Below are positions 3,101 to 64,000 of a stretch of DNA of 64,000 nt, piece after piece. Under the pieces are notes generated by a model. That model saw nothing but the letters and a program-made list of their open reading frames with translations, had not been told where the DNA came from and made no database searches. Made by a program: the position numbers and the translations under genes. The stretch lies in the sequence record MK250021.1; one strand, written 5' to 3'. Position 1 is the stretch's first letter. Every line of letters starts with the position of its first letter.

Positions 3101-6100
3101 TAAGTTTCTCAGTATTATATGGTAACATTAATTCCAACGCTTTCATGAATAATATCATGGTTCCTGTTACAACAGTCATCACACCTGCAATTGCCGTCAT
3201 TACTACAGCACCTAATGTAATAAATGGAAGAATAGGCGTCATCGCACCTAATGCAGTCATAAATGTTCCCATAATAGTTAACAAACCTATCATTGTAGCT
3301 GCACCTAAAAATACTGCGCCACCTTTATTTAAATCATCAATTTTCTTTGCTTCCCATGCGAATAAAACCATTGTTCCTCCAACAATATCCATCACTGCAC
3401 CAATAGCGGACATAACAATACCACCTATAATAGTATCTGGTAAAAATTTCTCTAATTTAGAAACACCGTACATTACCAAACCCATTAGACCTAAAACACC
3501 TGCCATAACAGCAGCACCTAAAAATACTGCACCACCTTCATTTAATTCTAATATTTTCTTAGATTCTATTGCAAATGCTAAACATGCAGTCCCTATTACT
3601 AACATAACTATTGCAACTGCAGTCATAATAACTGCACCAACTGCTAATTCAACTGCATACTTATCTGCGAATTTTCCTATAAAGAATAATACAGTTCCAA
3701 ATATCGCTAATGTTCCTATCACAACACCTGCACCTATTAATGCGTCGTCCCACATTTTACCAATAGGAATCAATATATCTTTAACAATCAATGATATACC
3801 TAATAAAATAAATGCCATTGCCGCTGTTGCAAATATTGCATATGCTGCTTTCTTACCATCTACTTTAGCCAAGAAATAAGTACCTGCAATAAGAGTAATA
3901 ATAATGAATAATGTAATACCCATTCCTATACCTGCTTCTTTACCATTCTAACCTATAGGAATAAGTAAATCTTTTGTAATCAATGCAATACCCATATAAA
4001 TAATTGCAAGAGTAGCAGTAGCAAGAACACCCCATAAGGCTTTCTTTCCATTTACCATATTCAATACATAAACGCCTGCAACTAATCCTGCTATTATAAA
4101 CATTGTTACTATTGCACCTAAATAAACTTCCGGCGCTTTCTTTCCAATAGGTATTAAAAACGCAACAGATATAATAGCAACCAATGCAAACACAGCAGAT
4201 ATTTTAATAAGATTATTTACCCCTCTATCTATACGTTTACCATGTTTATCTAATGATTTAACTGCAAATATGCCTAATGCTATAATAAAAGATATAACCA
4301 ACGCACCTTTTGATACATCATCTAATCTCTTGCCAATAGGTGCCAATAATGTTGCTGACACCAAAGCTATAATTGCAAATACAGCAGAAATCTTTAACAT
4401 TGCATCTGTAGCGTATGTTAATTTCTTATTACCTATTTTAGACAATTTATTAACAATGAAAATAGTTCCTGCAGTAAATAATGTAAGTATTCCTATAGAT
4501 GCAAGTATAGTTTCCGTACTATTATTTTTAACAGTTAACGATAATAATAACATTGATACAGATAATGACATAATCATTATTCCAATACCAGTTAAAACAC
4601 CCTGTACATTTTTAAGGCTCTTATCTAATTTCTTCTCTGATAAATCTTCTATCAAACTCTTAAATCCAGAAACAGCAACTCTCATAACAATTAAACTTGC
4701 TACAACTGCAGTTAATCCAACAATCTTAGTTACAATAGATAATCCTATAATAATACCGCCTATCATACCTATTGCTGAACTTAAACTTCTTATTATCACC
4801 TATGCTCCTTTTACATCTTTAACTTTTAATTTTTTAGCTAAATCTGTAATAGTATTCTTCATGAATTTAATCAAATACCTAACTACTAAAACAGATTCAA
4901 TTATTGTTTTAAAAGATGTTAGCTTAATAGTTAATGCAATGAATACAATACCGTATAATAATGTTTTCAATGCATTATTCCATGCATTCATAAAAGATGA
5001 TAAAACTTTAACTTGTTTTACATCCCATTTTTCTTTTAATATTGTGTTAAAGAAATCTACTATTTTCTATGCACGTTTCTGTGTTAATGATTTTACAGCA
5101 AACATGAAATTAAGAATCTATATCTTCTTAATATCAAATATTACATTTAATAGCTATACCATACTATTAACAGTTTGTGCAACCGTTTTATTATCTGGTA
5201 TTTCCGTTGCAAATGCGACAAAGAAACTCGCAAGCATTTTAGCAGTAATAGGATTCAATACCTTCATTACTTTAAATATAGAAAACTTCTATTCAGGATC
5301 TGCTATCTTTACTAAAGGATCTAATATACCACCAATATATTTAACGTTCTCACTTATTTCTTTTCCTTTTAAATATTTAGCGATCTATCCTATGAACTAA
5401 CCTAATTGTCTGCCTAATAACCAACCTCTTATAGGATTAAGACTTATCTACATTTTAAAAACATTTGATGTTACCAATGCGGATAATCCTCCCATCAAGT
5501 CTCCAATGGGTTTAATTATTTTTTGAATATCTTTATTTTTTAATTTCGTTTTACTAATAGACGAAACTAATGCAGATATAAATTTGCCTAAACGTTGTGC
5601 AGTTTTAACATCAAGCTTCCCAATATTTTCCTATAACTTAATCATATCAAGAGCAACAAGTTTGGACATTGTTTCAACAACTGCTTTAATTATACCGACA
5701 CTTCGTCCTACTGATTTAGAATTCTATATTGTTAACCCTTGTATAAAATCAACTATTTTTTTTGCGCCTTCTGCATTTATTTCTGTCATTTTATTAATAG
5801 CTTTCAGAAAACTATCAATATTTGTAAATGTATTGTCATCAACTTTAAGACTTGATAAAACTGTATTTACATTTCCTATAGATGTGGCAACTTTATTCAA
5901 AACATCATTGTCAATCTATTCCATGGATACAAGTCCTTTTGACAACTTCTCCAACTATTCTCCAACAGTTGCTGCTGATTCCTCTTTAGCAGTCTCAACG
6001 ATACCCTATAACAAACTGATTATAGTAGAATCAGCTTTCTGTTCAATAGTTTCTTTCTTTTTCTCCTATTGCTGACTTACCATAGTGTCCAAAATATTAA

Positions 6101-58413: not shown

Positions 58414-59634
58414 TTATATACATTCTCTTTTATTATTTTCTAAATATTCATTTATTATAGTTTTTATTATTTCTATCTTATTGCTCCATATAGGAAGATA
58501 ATTCAGATTATTCATTTTCGCAGTTTGACATTTAAAAGGATCAATGATTGACCAAACATTTACAGCAGATTTATATTGTTTTGATATTTCTGCTTTTTGT
58601 TTCCACTTATTTAATAAATCAATATCATCTTTATTATCTTCATCAAATAAATGTTTCCCATGTGTCCAAAATGCGTTTATCTCTATAAATAAATCTAATG
58701 GTTTTATATAGAAATCTACATGGAATGGATAACGCTCATCAACATTTACATTAAACTATATATCATCTTTATCAAATATTGTTTGTAAATATTCATATGT
58801 TTGATATTCTGGTTTTGACATACCAAAATTATCTTTATATTTTTTCTTTATTGTTTTTACATATTGATCAAACTAATATTGATGAAAATTTTCTAATGAA
58901 CCATATTTTTTAATAACAGTTTCTTTTGTCTTTTCTTTATTATTAAATGTTGGATCCCCATATAATTCTAATTTTGTTTCTTTAATTTTGTTTTTTATTT
59001 CTTCATTTTTTGCAGGGTTATCAACGCCATATTTTTTAATAACAGTTTCTCTTGATTTTTCTTTATTATTATCTGACTAAAAACTATATTTACACCCATA
59101 TTTTTTTAAACATGTATTAATTGATTTCTATTTAACTTCTTCATTCTATCCTGAAAATTCTACANNNNNNNNNNNNNNNNNNNNNNNNNNTGTCTTCTAT
59201 AAATATTCCGATGTTTTTGTATATGATGAAACTCCATATTTTTCTAAACATGTTTGTTTTATTTTATCTTTAACTGATTTTAACTACATTTGATGTTCAA
59301 CACCATATCGTTCTTTTAATGTATTTTTTATTTTATTCTATACATTAACTGAATTCATTACACATCGTGAATTTGAACAAAATTTACGAAATCCTCTACT
59401 ATAACAATTAAATCTCACAGGTTTCCCACATGTTTCACATACTGGTCTTATTTCTATTTTATTTACAATACGGTATATTGTCTCCTATATAGATTCGCTA
59501 TCATTATATCTATTAATTAAATAATCATAAATATCTTGATGTTTATTTAACCAAGATAATCTTGTATAATTTTTTGCTAACTAATTCTTTTTTGTTATAA
59601 ATTTTTCTTTTATGTAGTCATCATTAATAATCAT
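58414..59634 (-). CDS. Homing endonuclease (Vsr/EDxHD-like) with KYG repeats, many TAG, spans a 26-nt gap
   Basis: CETCG/CSNSRC, repeated T..KKYG units, VDFYIKPLDLFIEINAFWTHG; absent from the track. Confidence 0.78.
59165..59190. other. Assembly gap (N run, 26 nt)
   Basis: Run of N inside a repeat-rich endonuclease gene. Confidence 1.
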
Positions 59635-59725
59635 ATCTAATAATAAATTATTATTATTTTTAATTATATAAAAAATGAGGTAAATAGTTTTTAACAGAAT
59701 TAAAACTATTTACCTCATTAATATA

Positions 59726-60463
59726 TTAATTAATACTTGCTTCTTTTATAGGATCTTCATCATTATCATTTTCATCTGAAATACCCATTGTTTCCTCCAA
59801 ATCTTTAACATCATCAAATGCAGATTGATCTGGTAATTGGAACATTGGGTGAATAACATGCTCATTTATATAATCAAGATATTCTGGTGTAAATACCTTA
59901 TCAGACCAAAATTCAGTAAAAGGAACTTGTTCATTAAGATGTTTTACTACAATATACCTTGCTGTATCTTTCGGTAAACAATAATGTGTTTCACCATCAT
60001 CTGTTGTCCATGTATATACTTTCTTTTTATCTGAATCTGATAATTTATCATATTCTTTTTGCGTAAGTAAATTTCCTCTACAAACACCTGAATTGTCCCA
60101 TGTCATAAATTGTTCCAAACCAACATATGGGTTAGGTTTTTTAAAATATGGAATTTGAAATTTCACTTTAATTGGTCTGCAAAAACGAGACTTAACTGGT
60201 TTTGCTGTAACTAAAACACCATTCTTTGTACCTGCATCAGAACCTTGTCTTGATTTTGCAGCTGAATCATTCTCTTTATCTTCCAGTTTAGCAGCACTTA
60301 ATTCAATTGTAATTGATGCATTATATACAATACCTGAATTATGATTTATAATACCATTTGCAGAAACATAATTATGTGTGTCTTTAACTGTTAAATCTAT
60401 TACATCCTCACTTAATTCTGACTATATCTTCTTTACAATCTTTAACTTTCTATATTTCATCAT
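59726..60463 (-). CDS. uvsX: Split-intein C fragment fused to the UvsX/RecA C-terminal part, 245 aa (TAG at codon 14)
   Basis: MMKYRKLKIVKKI*SELSEDVIDLTVKDTHNYVSANGIINHN|SGIVYNAS...KSRF; in frame with track ORF 59726-60166. Confidence 0.9.
60338..60463 (-). mobile_element. Split intein IntC (UvsX), 42 aa, basic N-terminus
   Basis: Blocks F and G; His-Asn then +1 Ser. Confidence 0.9.
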
Positions 60464-61799
60464 TTATATATTGCGTTATTTTTTTATATTCTAAATATTT
60501 AAAAACTGTTTCTGAAATTCTAACAATACCTAATACATTATTATCTATTAATAAAATATCATTATCTCTTTGCTTATCCAATTCTTCCTAATGAAATACA
60601 CCTTGTCCACCATCATATTCAAATATAATTATTTTACCTTTATATTCTAAATACCCATCACATGCATAAAATATTTTATTTCGTGTTTTATCTGATATTT
60701 CATCTGGAATTATTACTATATATGGTTTATGAATGATTTTCTTATCGATATATTTTTGTAAAAATTCAAAACATCTATTTTCTGATTCTGATATATTTGT
60801 CATCCAGCCACCTTTTATTTTACATAAAAAGTTATCACTATGTTTCCAATTTTTCCAAATATTTTTTGCTAAATTTGATTGTAATTCTTTTTTCTTTAAA
60901 TAATCTTCATATGATTTATAACCTTTATATTCCTCACATGATGGATTAATTTCATGCACTTTTAATTTAGCTTCATCATCAGAATATCCTAACTTCTTCC
61001 AATAATTAAACGTCCATACACTATGTTCTTTTGCATAATATGAAGCTTTCTTTTTTGCATCCTCTATAGTTAGCCCTAAATTTAACCAATATTTTGTTGT
61101 GCTTTTAGAACATGTTGAATTATTCTATTAAACTTTACTTACTTCTATTTTTGCGTCTTCTAATGTATAACCTTTATTTAACCAATATTCAACACAACGC
61201 GGTGATCTATTTTTATTTAATTCTCGTATAATTGATTCTGCTTCAGTATCACTATATCCTCGTGCTAAATAAAACGATTTACTACTTTTAATATATCCTT
61301 TATTCTACTTATCAGGATAATATTGTTTACACCAAATCATTAACTAATCATTAATATCTCGTTCTGTTATAAAATCAGAAAATGTTATGAAATTTATAAA
61401 TCTTTTAATAAAAGAAATATTATTCAAATTAAATGAATATTTATTATCTTTAATGAATGAATTAAATATATCATCTTTATTAAAATATACAACTGTCTTT
61501 TTATACTTATTTAATATAATTTTTTTATATTCATCAAATGAATATCCTCTAACATCCCAATATAAAAATGTTGTATTTTTATGTTTATTTGTAATATTCT
61601 TTAAATAATTTAATAATATATCTATTATTTCTTGAGAGCCATATACTTTATTTTCACTAAATAACTATTGTAACTTATTAATATACTATGTATTATTTGT
61701 ATTAATATTAAAATTATAAAACTTATTATATTTGTTTATAAACTATATAAACTCATTTATATCAAATACATTTATTTCTACTTTTTTCATATTAAACAT
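60408..61799 (-). pseudogene. Homing endonuclease (Vsr/EDxHD-like) inside uvsX, with an in-frame TAA at 61128-61130
   Basis: Four (F/Y)W/Y..(K/L/R)G(Y/L)...(E/D)A repeats; CDGYLEY...IFEYDG...FH; overlaps the IntC start by 56 nt. Confidence 0.75.
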
Positions 61800-61885
61800 T
61801 TCAAATTTTTGATTATTTTATACCTTATAATATTTATTCATATATAAAGTAAAAATAATCAAAAATTAAAAAATATTTTATGGTA

Positions 61886-62860
61886 TTATTCAGAAATTGC
61901 ATAAATTTCATCATTTTCATTTAATTCTGAAACTATTTTCCATGAGCTATCCAACTCTGGTTTATCAGGATTAATAAGAAATCTATGTGTATTTGAACAT
62001 GTAATAGTCTCTCCATTATCAAATGTAAATGTATATGTCGGTTTTTTAAAATGCCAAAGTTTCTCTACATCATGATATTCACCATCATGTGACAATACTT
62101 TATCTCCAACAACAACATCTTTCATTTGTTTAATTCCATTATTTGTAATAATTTTTTCATCTGGTCGTAAACAACCCATTGCTTGTATATTCTGAGGAAT
62201 AAATGACATAGATTGATATACATGGTTCACTACAATCCAAGGAATTTGCAATTTTGCAATTGGAGTAGCACAAACTCTAAACATTGCTTTAGTATCTTTT
62301 GCTTTTGTAAAATCTGCTTTTTGTGAACCTGACAATGTATCTTCACGTTCCTTTTCAGATGTTAAATTTCCGAGAGAATCCAATACAATAATAACTTTAT
62401 CATGTTGACCATACTTATCTTGTTGTTCTTGCAATTTATCACATAAATTTGCAATAAATTGGCTTGTCTCCATAATTGTATTAACTTTTTTAATAATTAA
62501 TTTAGATGGATCTACTCCAAGACGCCTAACAAAATCAGAATCTATTGCACCTTCAGAATCAAGATAAATTGGAATATAACCTAATTTTTGAGCTTCCCTA
62601 CAACATGAACATGCTAAAAAAGATTTACCAGCGCCAGATGTACCCGAGAACGTTACAACTCTACCAGTCGGTATTGCTTTATAAATATCACCTGAACAAC
62701 ATGCATTTAAAATATAATTACCTGTTGAAATCCATTCTTTTATATTTGAATACGCTGAATCTGCAATAATTTCAGCTTGATCATCTATACTACTTACCAT
62801 TGACATTAATGAACCAATACCACCTTCAAAATCTTCGCTTGACTACTTTTTCTTTGCCAT
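61886..62860 (-). CDS. uvsX: UvsX/RecA N-terminal part fused to split-intein N fragment, 324 aa (TAG at codon 6)
   Basis: ISTGN..LN, Walker A GTSGAGKS, YLDSE, Walker B IIVLDS, VVNHVY, then AMG|CLRPDEK. Confidence 0.95.
61889..62173 (-). mobile_element. Split intein IntN (UvsX), 95 aa, Cys-initiated
   Basis: Block A CLRPDEKI, VGDKVL, block B TCSNTHRF; acidic end; TAA stop. Confidence 0.92.
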
Positions 62861-62892
62861 AATATTAAATTACGTTAATTTTTATTTTATAT

Positions 62893-62921
62893 ATTATATA
62901 TGTTTTTTATTAATTTGTTTA
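62893..62921 (-). promoter_or_regulatory. Class II promoter TAAACA-N17-TATAAT for uvsX
   Basis: Motif with 17-bp spacing. Confidence 0.65.
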
Positions 62922-62987
62922 GAAAATAATAGCATCTAAAATTAATTTCTAATCTTAGATGCTATCTTATATTTAAGCTATAATAAA

Positions 62988-64000
62988 TTACATAATACCT
63001 CCAAGAACATCATCAAGACTCATTCCTGCTGCTGGATTTGTAGGAGCTGATGGAGCTGGTGCACCTGCATTCAAAATAGAATCAAGTTCTCCTGTACCTA
63101 CACCAGGAATATTAGCAGCATTAAAACCACCAGGAGTTGTCTGATTCATTGATGTAGCATCACTACCCATTTCAAGACCTGTTGCTGGTGCAGATGGAAT
63201 AGGATTTGCCGGAATTCCTGGACTTACCTGCGGTTGCATAGCTGGTTGCATATAAGGATTTGCTGTAGACATTGCTGCTGGTTGCATACCGGTTGCAGCT
63301 TGCATTGAAGCCTGAGGATTTGTATAAATCTTAATACATGAATTAACAAAATTAGTTGTTTCCTGTGTCCATGCATGATACTCATAAGGTTCAAGTGAAG
63401 GACAATTCTCCTTAAGATATGTAAGAATTGTAGGTTTAATATCTGGATTTGATTCAATTACTTGCTGAGTAATTGGTTGCCATGTCTCCTGACCTTGTGC
63501 ATTCTTAACCTGAATACGAAGAGCGCCATCTGCTGGTTGAAGATCAATAAACTGTGAATCATCAAAGTTATTGAAATTAGACACCAACTTACACTTTACA
63601 TAAAATGGACGTCCAACAAACATATTAAATGGATTTCTTGGAGTTCCCATAGGTGGATTCATCTCATTGTAAATCTTCTCATGAATCTTGATACCATAAC
63701 GCCATACAAGAATCTTACCTACCAACTGAGGTTCTGACTTACATGAAAGAATCTGTACAAGTGAAGCATAACGCTGACGACGTGAAAAATGCTTTGAATT
63801 TTCTTTAAGAACAGGATTCTCACTATTACGAAGTGCAAAGAATGTATCCTGTAGAATATCTGGTTGACCAATTGTAGATGGACAATCAACTTCCATCTGT
63901 GCATTTGTCAAAGGATTCTTAAGGAATACTGTATTCTTAGAAACGATAGATTTATTTGAAGGATCCTCTGGATTTGGAATAAAGCGAATTACTGCATCAT
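62988..64000 (-). CDS. gp32: Single-stranded DNA-binding protein (T4 gp32-like), 5'-partial
   Basis: AVIRFIP, GKILVWRYGIKIHEKI, GRPFYVK, NFNNFDDSQF; disordered tail ending SLDDVLGGIM. Confidence 0.85.
   Translation of the reverse strand, partial: DAVIRFIPNPEDPSNKSIVSKNTVFLKNPLTNAQMEVDCPSTIGQPDILQDTFFALRNSENPVLKENSKHFSRRQRYASLVQILSCKSEPQLVGKILVWRYGIKIHEKIYNEMNPPMGTPRNPFNMFVGRPFYVKCKLVSNFNNFDDSQFIDLQPADGALRIQVKNAQGQETWQPITQQVIESNPDIKPTILTYLKENCPSLEPYEYHAWTQETTNFVNSCIKIYTNPQASMQAATGMQPAAMSTANPYMQPAMQPQVSPGIPANPIPSAPATGLEMGSDATSMNQTTPGGFNAANIPGVGTGELDSILNAGAPAPSAPTNPAAGMSLDDVLGGIM

Follow-up and report, generated by a model that had tools for sequence, protein, structure and literature searches.

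A fractured uvsX gene with predicted split-intein halves and an embedded Vsr-like endonuclease gene in Lak-B megaphages

The window analysed here is a stretch of 64,000 nucleotides from sequence record MK250021.1, and the subject of this work is the gene of the RecA-family recombinase UvsX found at positions 59726-62860 (3,135 nt, matching Prevotella phage Lak-B2, MK250021, with 100% identity). This uvsX gene is present in two separate halves: the N-terminal half ends in the N-terminal part of an intein (IntN), the C-terminal half begins with an intein C-terminal part (IntC), and a free-standing endonuclease open reading frame (ORF) is placed between them. We consider it very probable that uvsX of the Lak-B phages has been fractured by a mobile element made up of a split intein and a Vsr-like endonuclease, and that the two halves are converted into a normal UvsX protein through trans-splicing.

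In the mechanism that we propose, the three ORFs, which share one strand and probably one transcript, would give UvsX-N-IntN and IntC-UvsX-C as separate polypeptides, with TAG codons being read as glutamine. The acidic IntN would pair with the basic IntC, and protein trans-splicing would link ...QAMG to SGIVY..., affording a normal UvsX of ~432 amino acids. The endonuclease would cut intein-less uvsX genes (such as that of Lak-A), with the result that the whole element could spread by homing; a hairpin over the start codon probably limits endonuclease translation, and the overlap of the endonuclease gene with that of IntC may couple the translation of both.

Organisation of the locus and genetic code

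All genes of the uvsX locus lie on the minus strand, and TAG was translated as glutamine throughout. The first ORF (62860..61886) comprises the UvsX N-extein (62860..62174, 229 codons; Walker A motif GTSGAGKS, last residues ...NIQAMG), followed by the 95 codons of IntN (62173..61889), which exhibits a net charge of -7 and runs from Cys1 (62173-62171) to a TAA stop (61888-61886); the histidine of its block-B sequence S-N-T-H is encoded at 61987-61985. An AT-rich non-coding spacer of 86 nt (61885..61800) separates this ORF from the endonuclease frame (61799..60408, 463 codons, stop 60410-60408), which differs in frame from IntN, and an RNA hairpin (61882..61788) within the spacer reaches over the endonuclease start codon (61799-61797). 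The last ORF (60463..59726) begins with IntC (60463..60338), which comprises 42 codons from an ATG at 60463, ends in ...GIINHN and exhibits a net charge of +2; it continues with the 203 codons of the UvsX C-extein (60337..59729, stop 59728-59726), starting at Ser+1 with SGIVYNAS. The start of IntC is overlapped by the 3' end of the endonuclease gene over 56 nt (60463-60408), again in a different frame. An earlier note on this DNA, made from the sequence alone, had described UvsX-N-IntN ending in a TAA, an 86-nt gap and a separately initiated IntC (...HN|S), and these coordinates proved to be exact; its description of the endonuclease as a free-standing, out-of-frame ORF also holds, but an in-frame TAA at 61130-61128 had been missed.

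Each half of the split gene contains an in-frame TAG, at codon 6 of the N-extein (62845-62843) and at codon 14 of IntC (60424-60422). No in-frame ATG, GTG or TTG lies between the latter and the conserved intein blocks and hence a complete IntC needs decoding of TAG. Both codons had been noted before as demanding read-through: their positions are confirmed, but no special read-through is called for, as they are ordinary sense codons of the genome-wide code 15 of Lak phages, in which TAG encodes glutamine and a phage suppressor tRNA is present (PMC8346664). When TAG was read as sense in the window (G+C content of 25.5%), the longest ORF grew to 1,991 aa (507 aa otherwise), and ORFs of at least 100 aa covered a fraction of 0.86 rather than 0.71; treating TGA as a sense codon gave no gain in maximum ORF length. 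Conserved genes carry in-frame TAG codons (eight in the endonuclease, three in the Lak-A uvsX gene) and their ORFs are restored with TAG as sense. No tRNA, including suppressor tRNA, was found within the window, and thus the assignment of code 15 is based on ORF statistics and on the literature.

The 3,135-nt stretch is 99.3-100% identical in eight other Lak-B genomes, and Lak-A genomes match it over the exteins only. A split gene of this kind could also be an artefact, either through misassembly or a sequencing error in a contiguous maxi-intein or through an RNA intron giving one frame: the window does stem from a metagenome-assembled genome, and its base at 61130 is unlike that in all other copies. 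However, the identical layout is found in nine Lak-B genomes, in two IMG/VR contigs and in independent contigs from other studies, whilst diverged loci from ENA, Logan and NCBI repeat the same stops, starts and change of frame; furthermore, the endonuclease lies in another frame behind the AT-rich spacer. A search of positions 59500-63000 revealed no group I or group II intron family from Rfam at E <= 1, and contigs of DNA or RNA libraries over the locus exhibit no joints. The assembly error or intron that the earlier note had named as speaking against its interpretation has therefore left no sign, and an artefactual split is in our view hardly conceivable.

Identity of UvsX and precise insertion of the element

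The UvsX N half matches the Pfam RecA family with 48.5 bits (cut-off 27) and PHROG 97 (UvsX-like recombinase) at 1e-45, and the C-extein matches the recombinase family PHROG 18112. The intact Lak-A-type allele P0030 matches the phage UvsX 9gbg (9e-34), the T4-type protein 3io5 (2e-21) and E. coli RecA; compared with Lak-B4, this allele exhibits 97% identity to the N half and, over its residues 225-430, 90% identity to the C half. The RecA ATPase core, the Walker A motif and the L2 region are all present, which places the protein in the UvsX/RecA family.

In Lak-A1, uvsX is one uninterrupted ORF of 431 codons that reads ...NIQAMG|SGIVYNAS... at the insertion site, and the intein-less IMG/VR relatives L005 and L006 likewise read QAMG|SG. 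Because the Lak-A gene is uninterrupted and exhibits this sequence, the element (62173..60338, 1,836 nt) can be recognised by comparison as a precise insertion, the removal of which would restore a normal UvsX: the joined exteins of the window comprise 1,299 nt, are collinear with the 1,296-nt Lak-A gene and display ~88% identity across the junction, with a predicted spliced junction peptide of ...NIQAMG-SGIVYNASITIELSAAK. HMMER aligns this junction to ...TTGG|NALKFYAS of E. coli RecA, and the insertion site would by our own numbering correspond to RecA G212|N213, at the C-terminal end of the DNA-binding loop L2. The restored sequence AMG-SGIVYNAS and its alignment to RecA TGGNALKFYAS had been anticipated in the earlier note, which also proposed a comparison with intact uvsX alleles of related Lak genomes; the HMMER alignment agrees, and Lak-A1 exhibits the exact predicted junction. 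No clear gradient of identity (co-conversion tract) was seen around the junction in the comparison of Lak-A with Lak-B.

Genome-wide counts of RecA-family and endonuclease genes were made on the near-identical Lak-B4 record (550 kb), where the two uvsX halves were the only RecA-family matches; exactly one endonuclease homolog is present in Lak-B4 and none in Lak-A1. These counts bear on the idea that the fractured gene is dead and its halves are relics, with recombination in Lak-B being performed by the host RecA or by another phage protein. Lak genomes do contain many selfish elements (a DUF7487 endonuclease-like gene adjoins uvsX itself), and the embedded endonuclease already exhibits a nonsense codon in the Lak-B2 assembly. 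Against this, both halves are open and are 90-97% identical at the protein level to the intact Lak-A UvsX, the Walker A and L2-flanking motifs are intact, and no further RecA-family gene is present in the Lak-B4 record; moreover, the split with its open frames has been kept in dozens of diverged lineages, including one (L016) that has lost the endonuclease and yet retains both intein halves. We hence judge a dead uvsX gene to be very improbable.

The split intein

All residues anticipated for splicing are present in the two intein halves: Cys1, the block-B S-x-x-H motif, the terminal His-Asn pair and Ser+1. The best PDB match of IntN in phmmer searches is the gp41-1 intein (6qaz, E 2.6e-6), with the block-B S-x-x-H motif being aligned. 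The intein profile search that the earlier note had suggested gave a mixed outcome: Pfam Intein_splicing, Hint and Hom_end_hint were found on both halves, but all matches were below the cut-off, including that of Intein_splicing to IntC residues 7-42 (1.6e-6). An alignment of IntC from six loci revealed the invariant pattern D.L.V...Y.V..N..INHN|SG. Judged by these sequence features, IntN and IntC represent a canonical split intein of the gp41-1 class. With gp41-1 (6qaz, 6riz) the Lak intein shares the canonical split site, Cys1, the block-B S-x-x-H motif, an IntN of ~90-95 aa and Ser+1; the two differ in host protein and in insertion site, their identity is modest, and the Lak intein would be active only by prediction from its sequence.

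Association of the two halves was addressed by complex prediction with the homologous IntN/IntC pair from locus L013, which uses the standard code. This pair reached a score of 0.59, compared to 0.00 for the best of three controls, with the runs agreeing in at least 94% of contacts and a partner pLDDT of at least 70. Among solved complexes, 51 of 78 attain the mark applied in these predictions, as do 2 of 108 mismatched pairs; a score no higher than 0.60 is displayed by just 5 of the 78 solved complexes, but by all 4 mismatches that passed. The prediction thus lends weak support to an association of IntN and IntC in L013.

A different role for the intein halves can be envisaged, in which they act as mere interaction domains and the UvsX halves assemble non-covalently, with no peptide bond being formed. 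Precedent exists in NrdA of Aeh1, which is fragmented by mobE and, as described in PMC3045599, assembles via interaction domains derived from the mobile element; in addition, splicing at the uvsX locus is a prediction, and the association of IntN and IntC itself has the weak support just described. What speaks against such an assembly is that Cys1, S-x-x-H, His-Asn and Ser+1 have been kept in lineages down to ~47% IntN identity, and that gp41-1, as the closest relative, undergoes rapid trans-splicing, being cited in PMC13014065 as among the fastest known (t1/2 ~5 s). Furthermore, ~137 residues left at the end of L2 would be expected to hinder both filament formation and DNA binding. We therefore find non-covalent assembly quite improbable, if somewhat less so than a dead gene, and favour covalent joining of the two halves by trans-splicing.

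The embedded endonuclease

In Lak-B2, the endonuclease frame is broken by the in-frame TAA at 61130-61128, beyond which the same frame runs on for 239 codons to 60408. The first part (61799..61131; 223 codons, five of them TAG) specifies the helical N-terminal region together with the initial 'YW..GYS..EA' repeats, and these continue across the TAA; more of the repeats lie in the second part (61127..60408, codons 225-463 and stop), as does the Vsr-like nuclease domain, which occupies residues 336-463 (starting at 60794). At the site of the TAA, Lak-B1, B4, B5, B7 and B8 as well as the IMG/VR contigs L003 and L004 exhibit CAA, which results in an intact protein of 463 aa. The same CAA is found in contigs from all four sequencing runs compared (two of DNA type, at >99% identity, and two RNA libraries), and the glutamine that it encodes is conserved in the alignment of the endonuclease family. 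The TAA is thus private to the Lak-B2 assembly, representing either an early step of decay or a minor variant or consensus call. A TAA-suppressor tRNA has been predicted in all 51 Lak genomes by Crisci et al. (PMC8346664) and could have a bearing on this codon.

Neither half of the endonuclease gave a match in Pfam or PHROG, and the protein did not match any PDB sequence by phmmer or by profile hmmsearch. An AlphaFold model based on 13 homologs exhibits a pLDDT of 79; whilst Foldseek retrieved no match to it in the PDB at E <= 0.001, structural alignment of residues 336-463 using VIA-align gave a Z-score of 9.4 with Vsr (1cw0; rmsd 2.6, 104 residues), of 9.0 with I-Bth0305I (3r3p; rmsd 2.8, 95/97 residues) and of 8.4 with a second Vsr entry (1vsr). 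In the family alignment, E340, E394 and H403 are conserved to at least 90% and D381 and D412 largely so, in a family that is without a Pfam or PDB match at sequence level, and the spacing of H403 and D412 (9) equals that of H213 and D222 in I-Bth0305I. The modelled C-terminal domain accordingly displays the characteristics of a Vsr-type fold. The candidate target of the endonuclease is the Lak-A sequence around ...CAAGCAATGGGT|TCGGGTATTGTA....

The spacer hairpin (61788-61882) exhibits a minimum free energy of -28.5 kcal/mol (z -6.7), with none of 200 shuffled sequences folding as well. Comparable hairpins are found in L015 (z -5.9) and L017 (z -3.75), and none at the start of the endonuclease in L013 and L014; an overlap of the endonuclease 3' end with IntC is seen in L013, L014 and L017 (50-53 nt). 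As to variation in the spacer, the sub-lineage of the window exhibits one additional T at position 61865 when compared to Lak-B1, B5, L003 and L004, and one base is missing near 61861 in contig X1.

Relatives and spread of the element

A search with the N half identified 41 clusters of proteins of 295-340 aa that end in IntN, with the split located in 31 of these at the site of the window (site A, ..G|C) and in 10 at a position 13-14 residues upstream (site B, NHVY[A/Q/S]|C). At least 31 protein clusters thus exhibit the site-A split with the same G|C junction, at 47-97% IntN identity to the window. The layout of UvsX-N-IntN, endonuclease and IntC-UvsX-C recurs in datasets without relation to one another: in L013 (Logan) and L014 (ENA), both with the standard code, as well as in the TAG-recoded L015 (ENA); the endonucleases of L013 and L014 are 34-35% identical to that of Lak. 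L016 (NCBI GCA_034286715.1, JANPXS010093370.1) contains a uvsX gene split at site A with both intein halves and without an endonuclease gene: its spacer of 153 nt (5476-5628) still encodes the endonuclease C-terminal motif LGIIRISE, and the locus looks like a split intein left stranded after loss of the endonuclease. Comparison of exteins and inteins reveals discordant identities to the window, with P0019 displaying 81% for the extein and 97% for IntN and P0021 86% and 53%, which would fit an independent movement of the element. The arrangement is not unique to Lak-B: dozens of metagenomic phages that lack annotation share it, among them loci devoid of the endonuclease and others in which uvsX is divided into three.

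Such a gene in three pieces is present in L017:4501-9170 (Logan contig of SRR17543908; cf. P0138 and P0140). The first piece consists of UvsX-N with an IntN at site B and is followed by a DUF7487 endonuclease gene; the second, of only 147 aa, consists of the site-B IntC, 14 aa of the L2 loop and the site-A IntN and is followed by a homolog of the window endonuclease; the third comprises the site-A IntC and UvsX-C. The 147-aa middle piece recurs in two other datasets at 66% and 55% identity, and the L2 segment of P0140 (SMSFIPQNIQAMG) is the same as that of Lak-B. As P0142 exhibits occupation of site B alone, all four states of occupancy of the two sites are found in nature. Contiguous inteins also occur: L007:4905-6713 contains a mini-intein at site B (HVYA|C...SHN|S), and L018:1880-3409 an intein inside the Walker A motif (GPSG|C...SSHN|TGKS), with L018 in addition containing the end of a site-B IntN and then a DUF7487 gene. 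From these data a further and rather unlikely scenario can be drawn, in which the part of uvsX that codes for L2 serves, in Lak-like gut phages, as a two-site landing pad for two split inteins, presumably orthogonal, and in which assembly of the recombinase, were the phage to have co-opted this arrangement, would act as a post-translational switch that times recombination-dependent replication; possible triggers of such a switch include concentration, redox state, single-stranded DNA and the timing of the TAG code switch.

The literature searched contains no description of a fractured uvsX gene, of UvsX with a split intein or of a Lak intein. The statement of the earlier note that no such case was known for a recA-family gene hence holds for this literature, but not for the sequence databases with their at least 31 site-A clusters. 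An atypically split intein, 'VidaL UvsX-2', has reportedly been found in a Lake Vida metagenome; if so, a split intein in UvsX would not be wholly new, whilst its canonical form at L2, with an accompanying endonuclease, would be.

Comparison with known systems

Fractured genes were described by Dassa et al. (2009) for gp41, NrdA, NrdJ, IMPDH, DnaE, terminase and ligase loci in the GOS metagenomes (PMC2677866). The Lak uvsX locus shares with these the split at a conserved site into two ORFs on the same strand, of which the N-terminal one ends in IntN and the C-terminal one begins with IntC, as well as the free-standing Vsr-like endonuclease gene between the halves. The regulatory features are also comparable: of the 16 endonuclease 5' UTRs from fractured genes, 15 contain an RNA hairpin, and the 3' end of the endonuclease overlaps the IntC ORF by 6-69 bp in 15 loci (PMC2677866), with Lak exhibiting a hairpin in the same place and an overlap of 56 nt. 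Variants lacking the endonuclease are known from both, with gp41-7 in the earlier data and L016 here. The assignment of the Lak locus to the fractured-gene class, as made in the earlier note, is thus well founded, with split halves, intein residues, an intervening endonuclease ORF, hairpin and overlap all present. Differences lie in the host gene, since uvsX in the 2009 study is a neighbouring gene and never a fractured one (PMC2677866), and in the context of a 550-kb gut megaphage using code 15, with TAG sense codons in intein, endonuclease and extein; furthermore, the N-terminal part of the Lak endonuclease consists of the 'YW..GYS..EA' helical repeats, which have no Pfam match and may or may not be of the NUMOD type of Dassa et al.

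The endonuclease I-Bth0305I is a Vsr-like homing endonuclease from a group I intron in recA of Bacillus phage 0305phi8-36 (PMC3239194). In common with the Lak endonuclease it exhibits a Vsr-like fold, the nuclease being located C-terminally of a DNA-binding region, and the target of both (for Lak, the presumed one) is the stretch of a recA-family gene that encodes L2; in contrast, I-Bth0305I is carried by an RNA intron, comprises 266 rather than 463 aa and displays no sequence similarity to the Lak protein by phmmer or hmmsearch. Contiguous inteins are known at sites a-e of RecA and RadA, including M. tuberculosis RecA (252-691), M. leprae RecA (206-570) and the P-loop of P. horikoshii RadA (PMC4513877). 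Like the Lak intein, these occupy functionally critical places in recombinases of the RecA superfamily and represent independent invasions of the same family, but all are single-chain inteins, and the Lak site (RecA G212|N213) differs by our own alignment from sites a, b and c, the three that were compared. Finally, the T4 gene segA is a neighbour of uvsX and encodes a free-standing endonuclease of the GIY-YIG type, which cleaves uvsX (PMC2988022). T4 and Lak thus have in common that a free-standing homing endonuclease of the phage is directed, in Lak presumably, at uvsX; segA lies beside the gene without interrupting it and involves no intein.

Several points weigh against the interpretation of the Lak-B locus as an active, mobile fractured gene. 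Whilst the anatomy, the exact insertion, the conservation and the fold are shown, everything functional (a spliced protein with its junction peptide, cleavage and homing, regulation by hairpin and overlap) is inferred rather than observed. The contigs of two metatranscriptome libraries that cover parts of the locus are only 92-93% identical to it and are no proof of transcription, ends or strand. The complex prediction was obtained for the homologous L013 pair rather than for that of the window, and solved split inteins known to the predictor may in part have inflated an already weak support. The Vsr assignment is based on structural re-alignment (Z ~9) and on conserved acidic and histidine residues, because no match was found in Pfam, PHROG or PDB sequences and no significant one by Foldseek. 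Lastly, the endonuclease of the window is truncated by the TAA, which makes homing by the Lak-B2 copy itself doubtful.

Neighbouring genes and sequence variation

Upstream of uvsX lies a gene for a gp32-like ssDNA-binding protein (62988-63998, minus strand; Pfam gp32 at 6.4e-8 on the full IMG/VR copy), and a terminator-like hairpin of 18 bp (62928-62966, minus strand) is located between the two genes. A scan for sigma-70 promoters gave 29 sites compared to 34 expected, using a model that is ill-suited to a Bacteroidota host. Directly downstream of uvsX, an ORF of 406 codons including 10 TAG codons is present (58414-59634, minus strand), the IMG/VR copy of which matches Pfam DUF7487 (1.9e-29), the family of the site-B endonucleases in L017 and L018; this ORF probably encodes a free-standing homing endonuclease beside uvsX, comparable to T4 segA. 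On either side of the intein-less Lak-A1 uvsX lies a sequence that by eye is similar to the DUF7487 gene of the window (L001:213-1485 and L001:2823-4034): the downstream one consists of two overlapping ORFs and is possibly frameshifted, and the upstream one (403 codons) is without a Lak-B counterpart at that place.

Within the N-extein, a stretch around the Walker A motif (62632-62698, minus strand) displays 20 differences in 67 nt between Lak-B2, B4, B7 and B8 on the one hand and Lak-B1, B5, L003 and L004 on the other, with these two sub-lineages differing outside of it at ~6 places in ~3 kb. It looks like a patch of gene conversion or recombination.

Conclusions

The fractured-gene kind is itself known, and what is new here is uvsX as the host gene and the context of a Lak megaphage; the relatives with uvsX in three pieces heighten the interest of the Lak split. 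Natural split inteins of the gp41-1 class are valued ligation tools, and the Lak-type family gives dozens of diverged IntN/IntC pairs, with the second pair that co-occurs at the neighbouring site in related loci making up a candidate orthogonal set. Gene callers would report two fragments from such a locus, along with an endonuclease that is broken up under code 11, and would miss the complete UvsX. In public data, the life cycle of the element can be followed from the empty site over the occupied site and a decaying endonuclease to the loss of the endonuclease with the split intein being stranded. A RecA-family recombinase thereby joins the short list of natural fractured genes, and some of the largest phages known encode their core recombinase in pieces.

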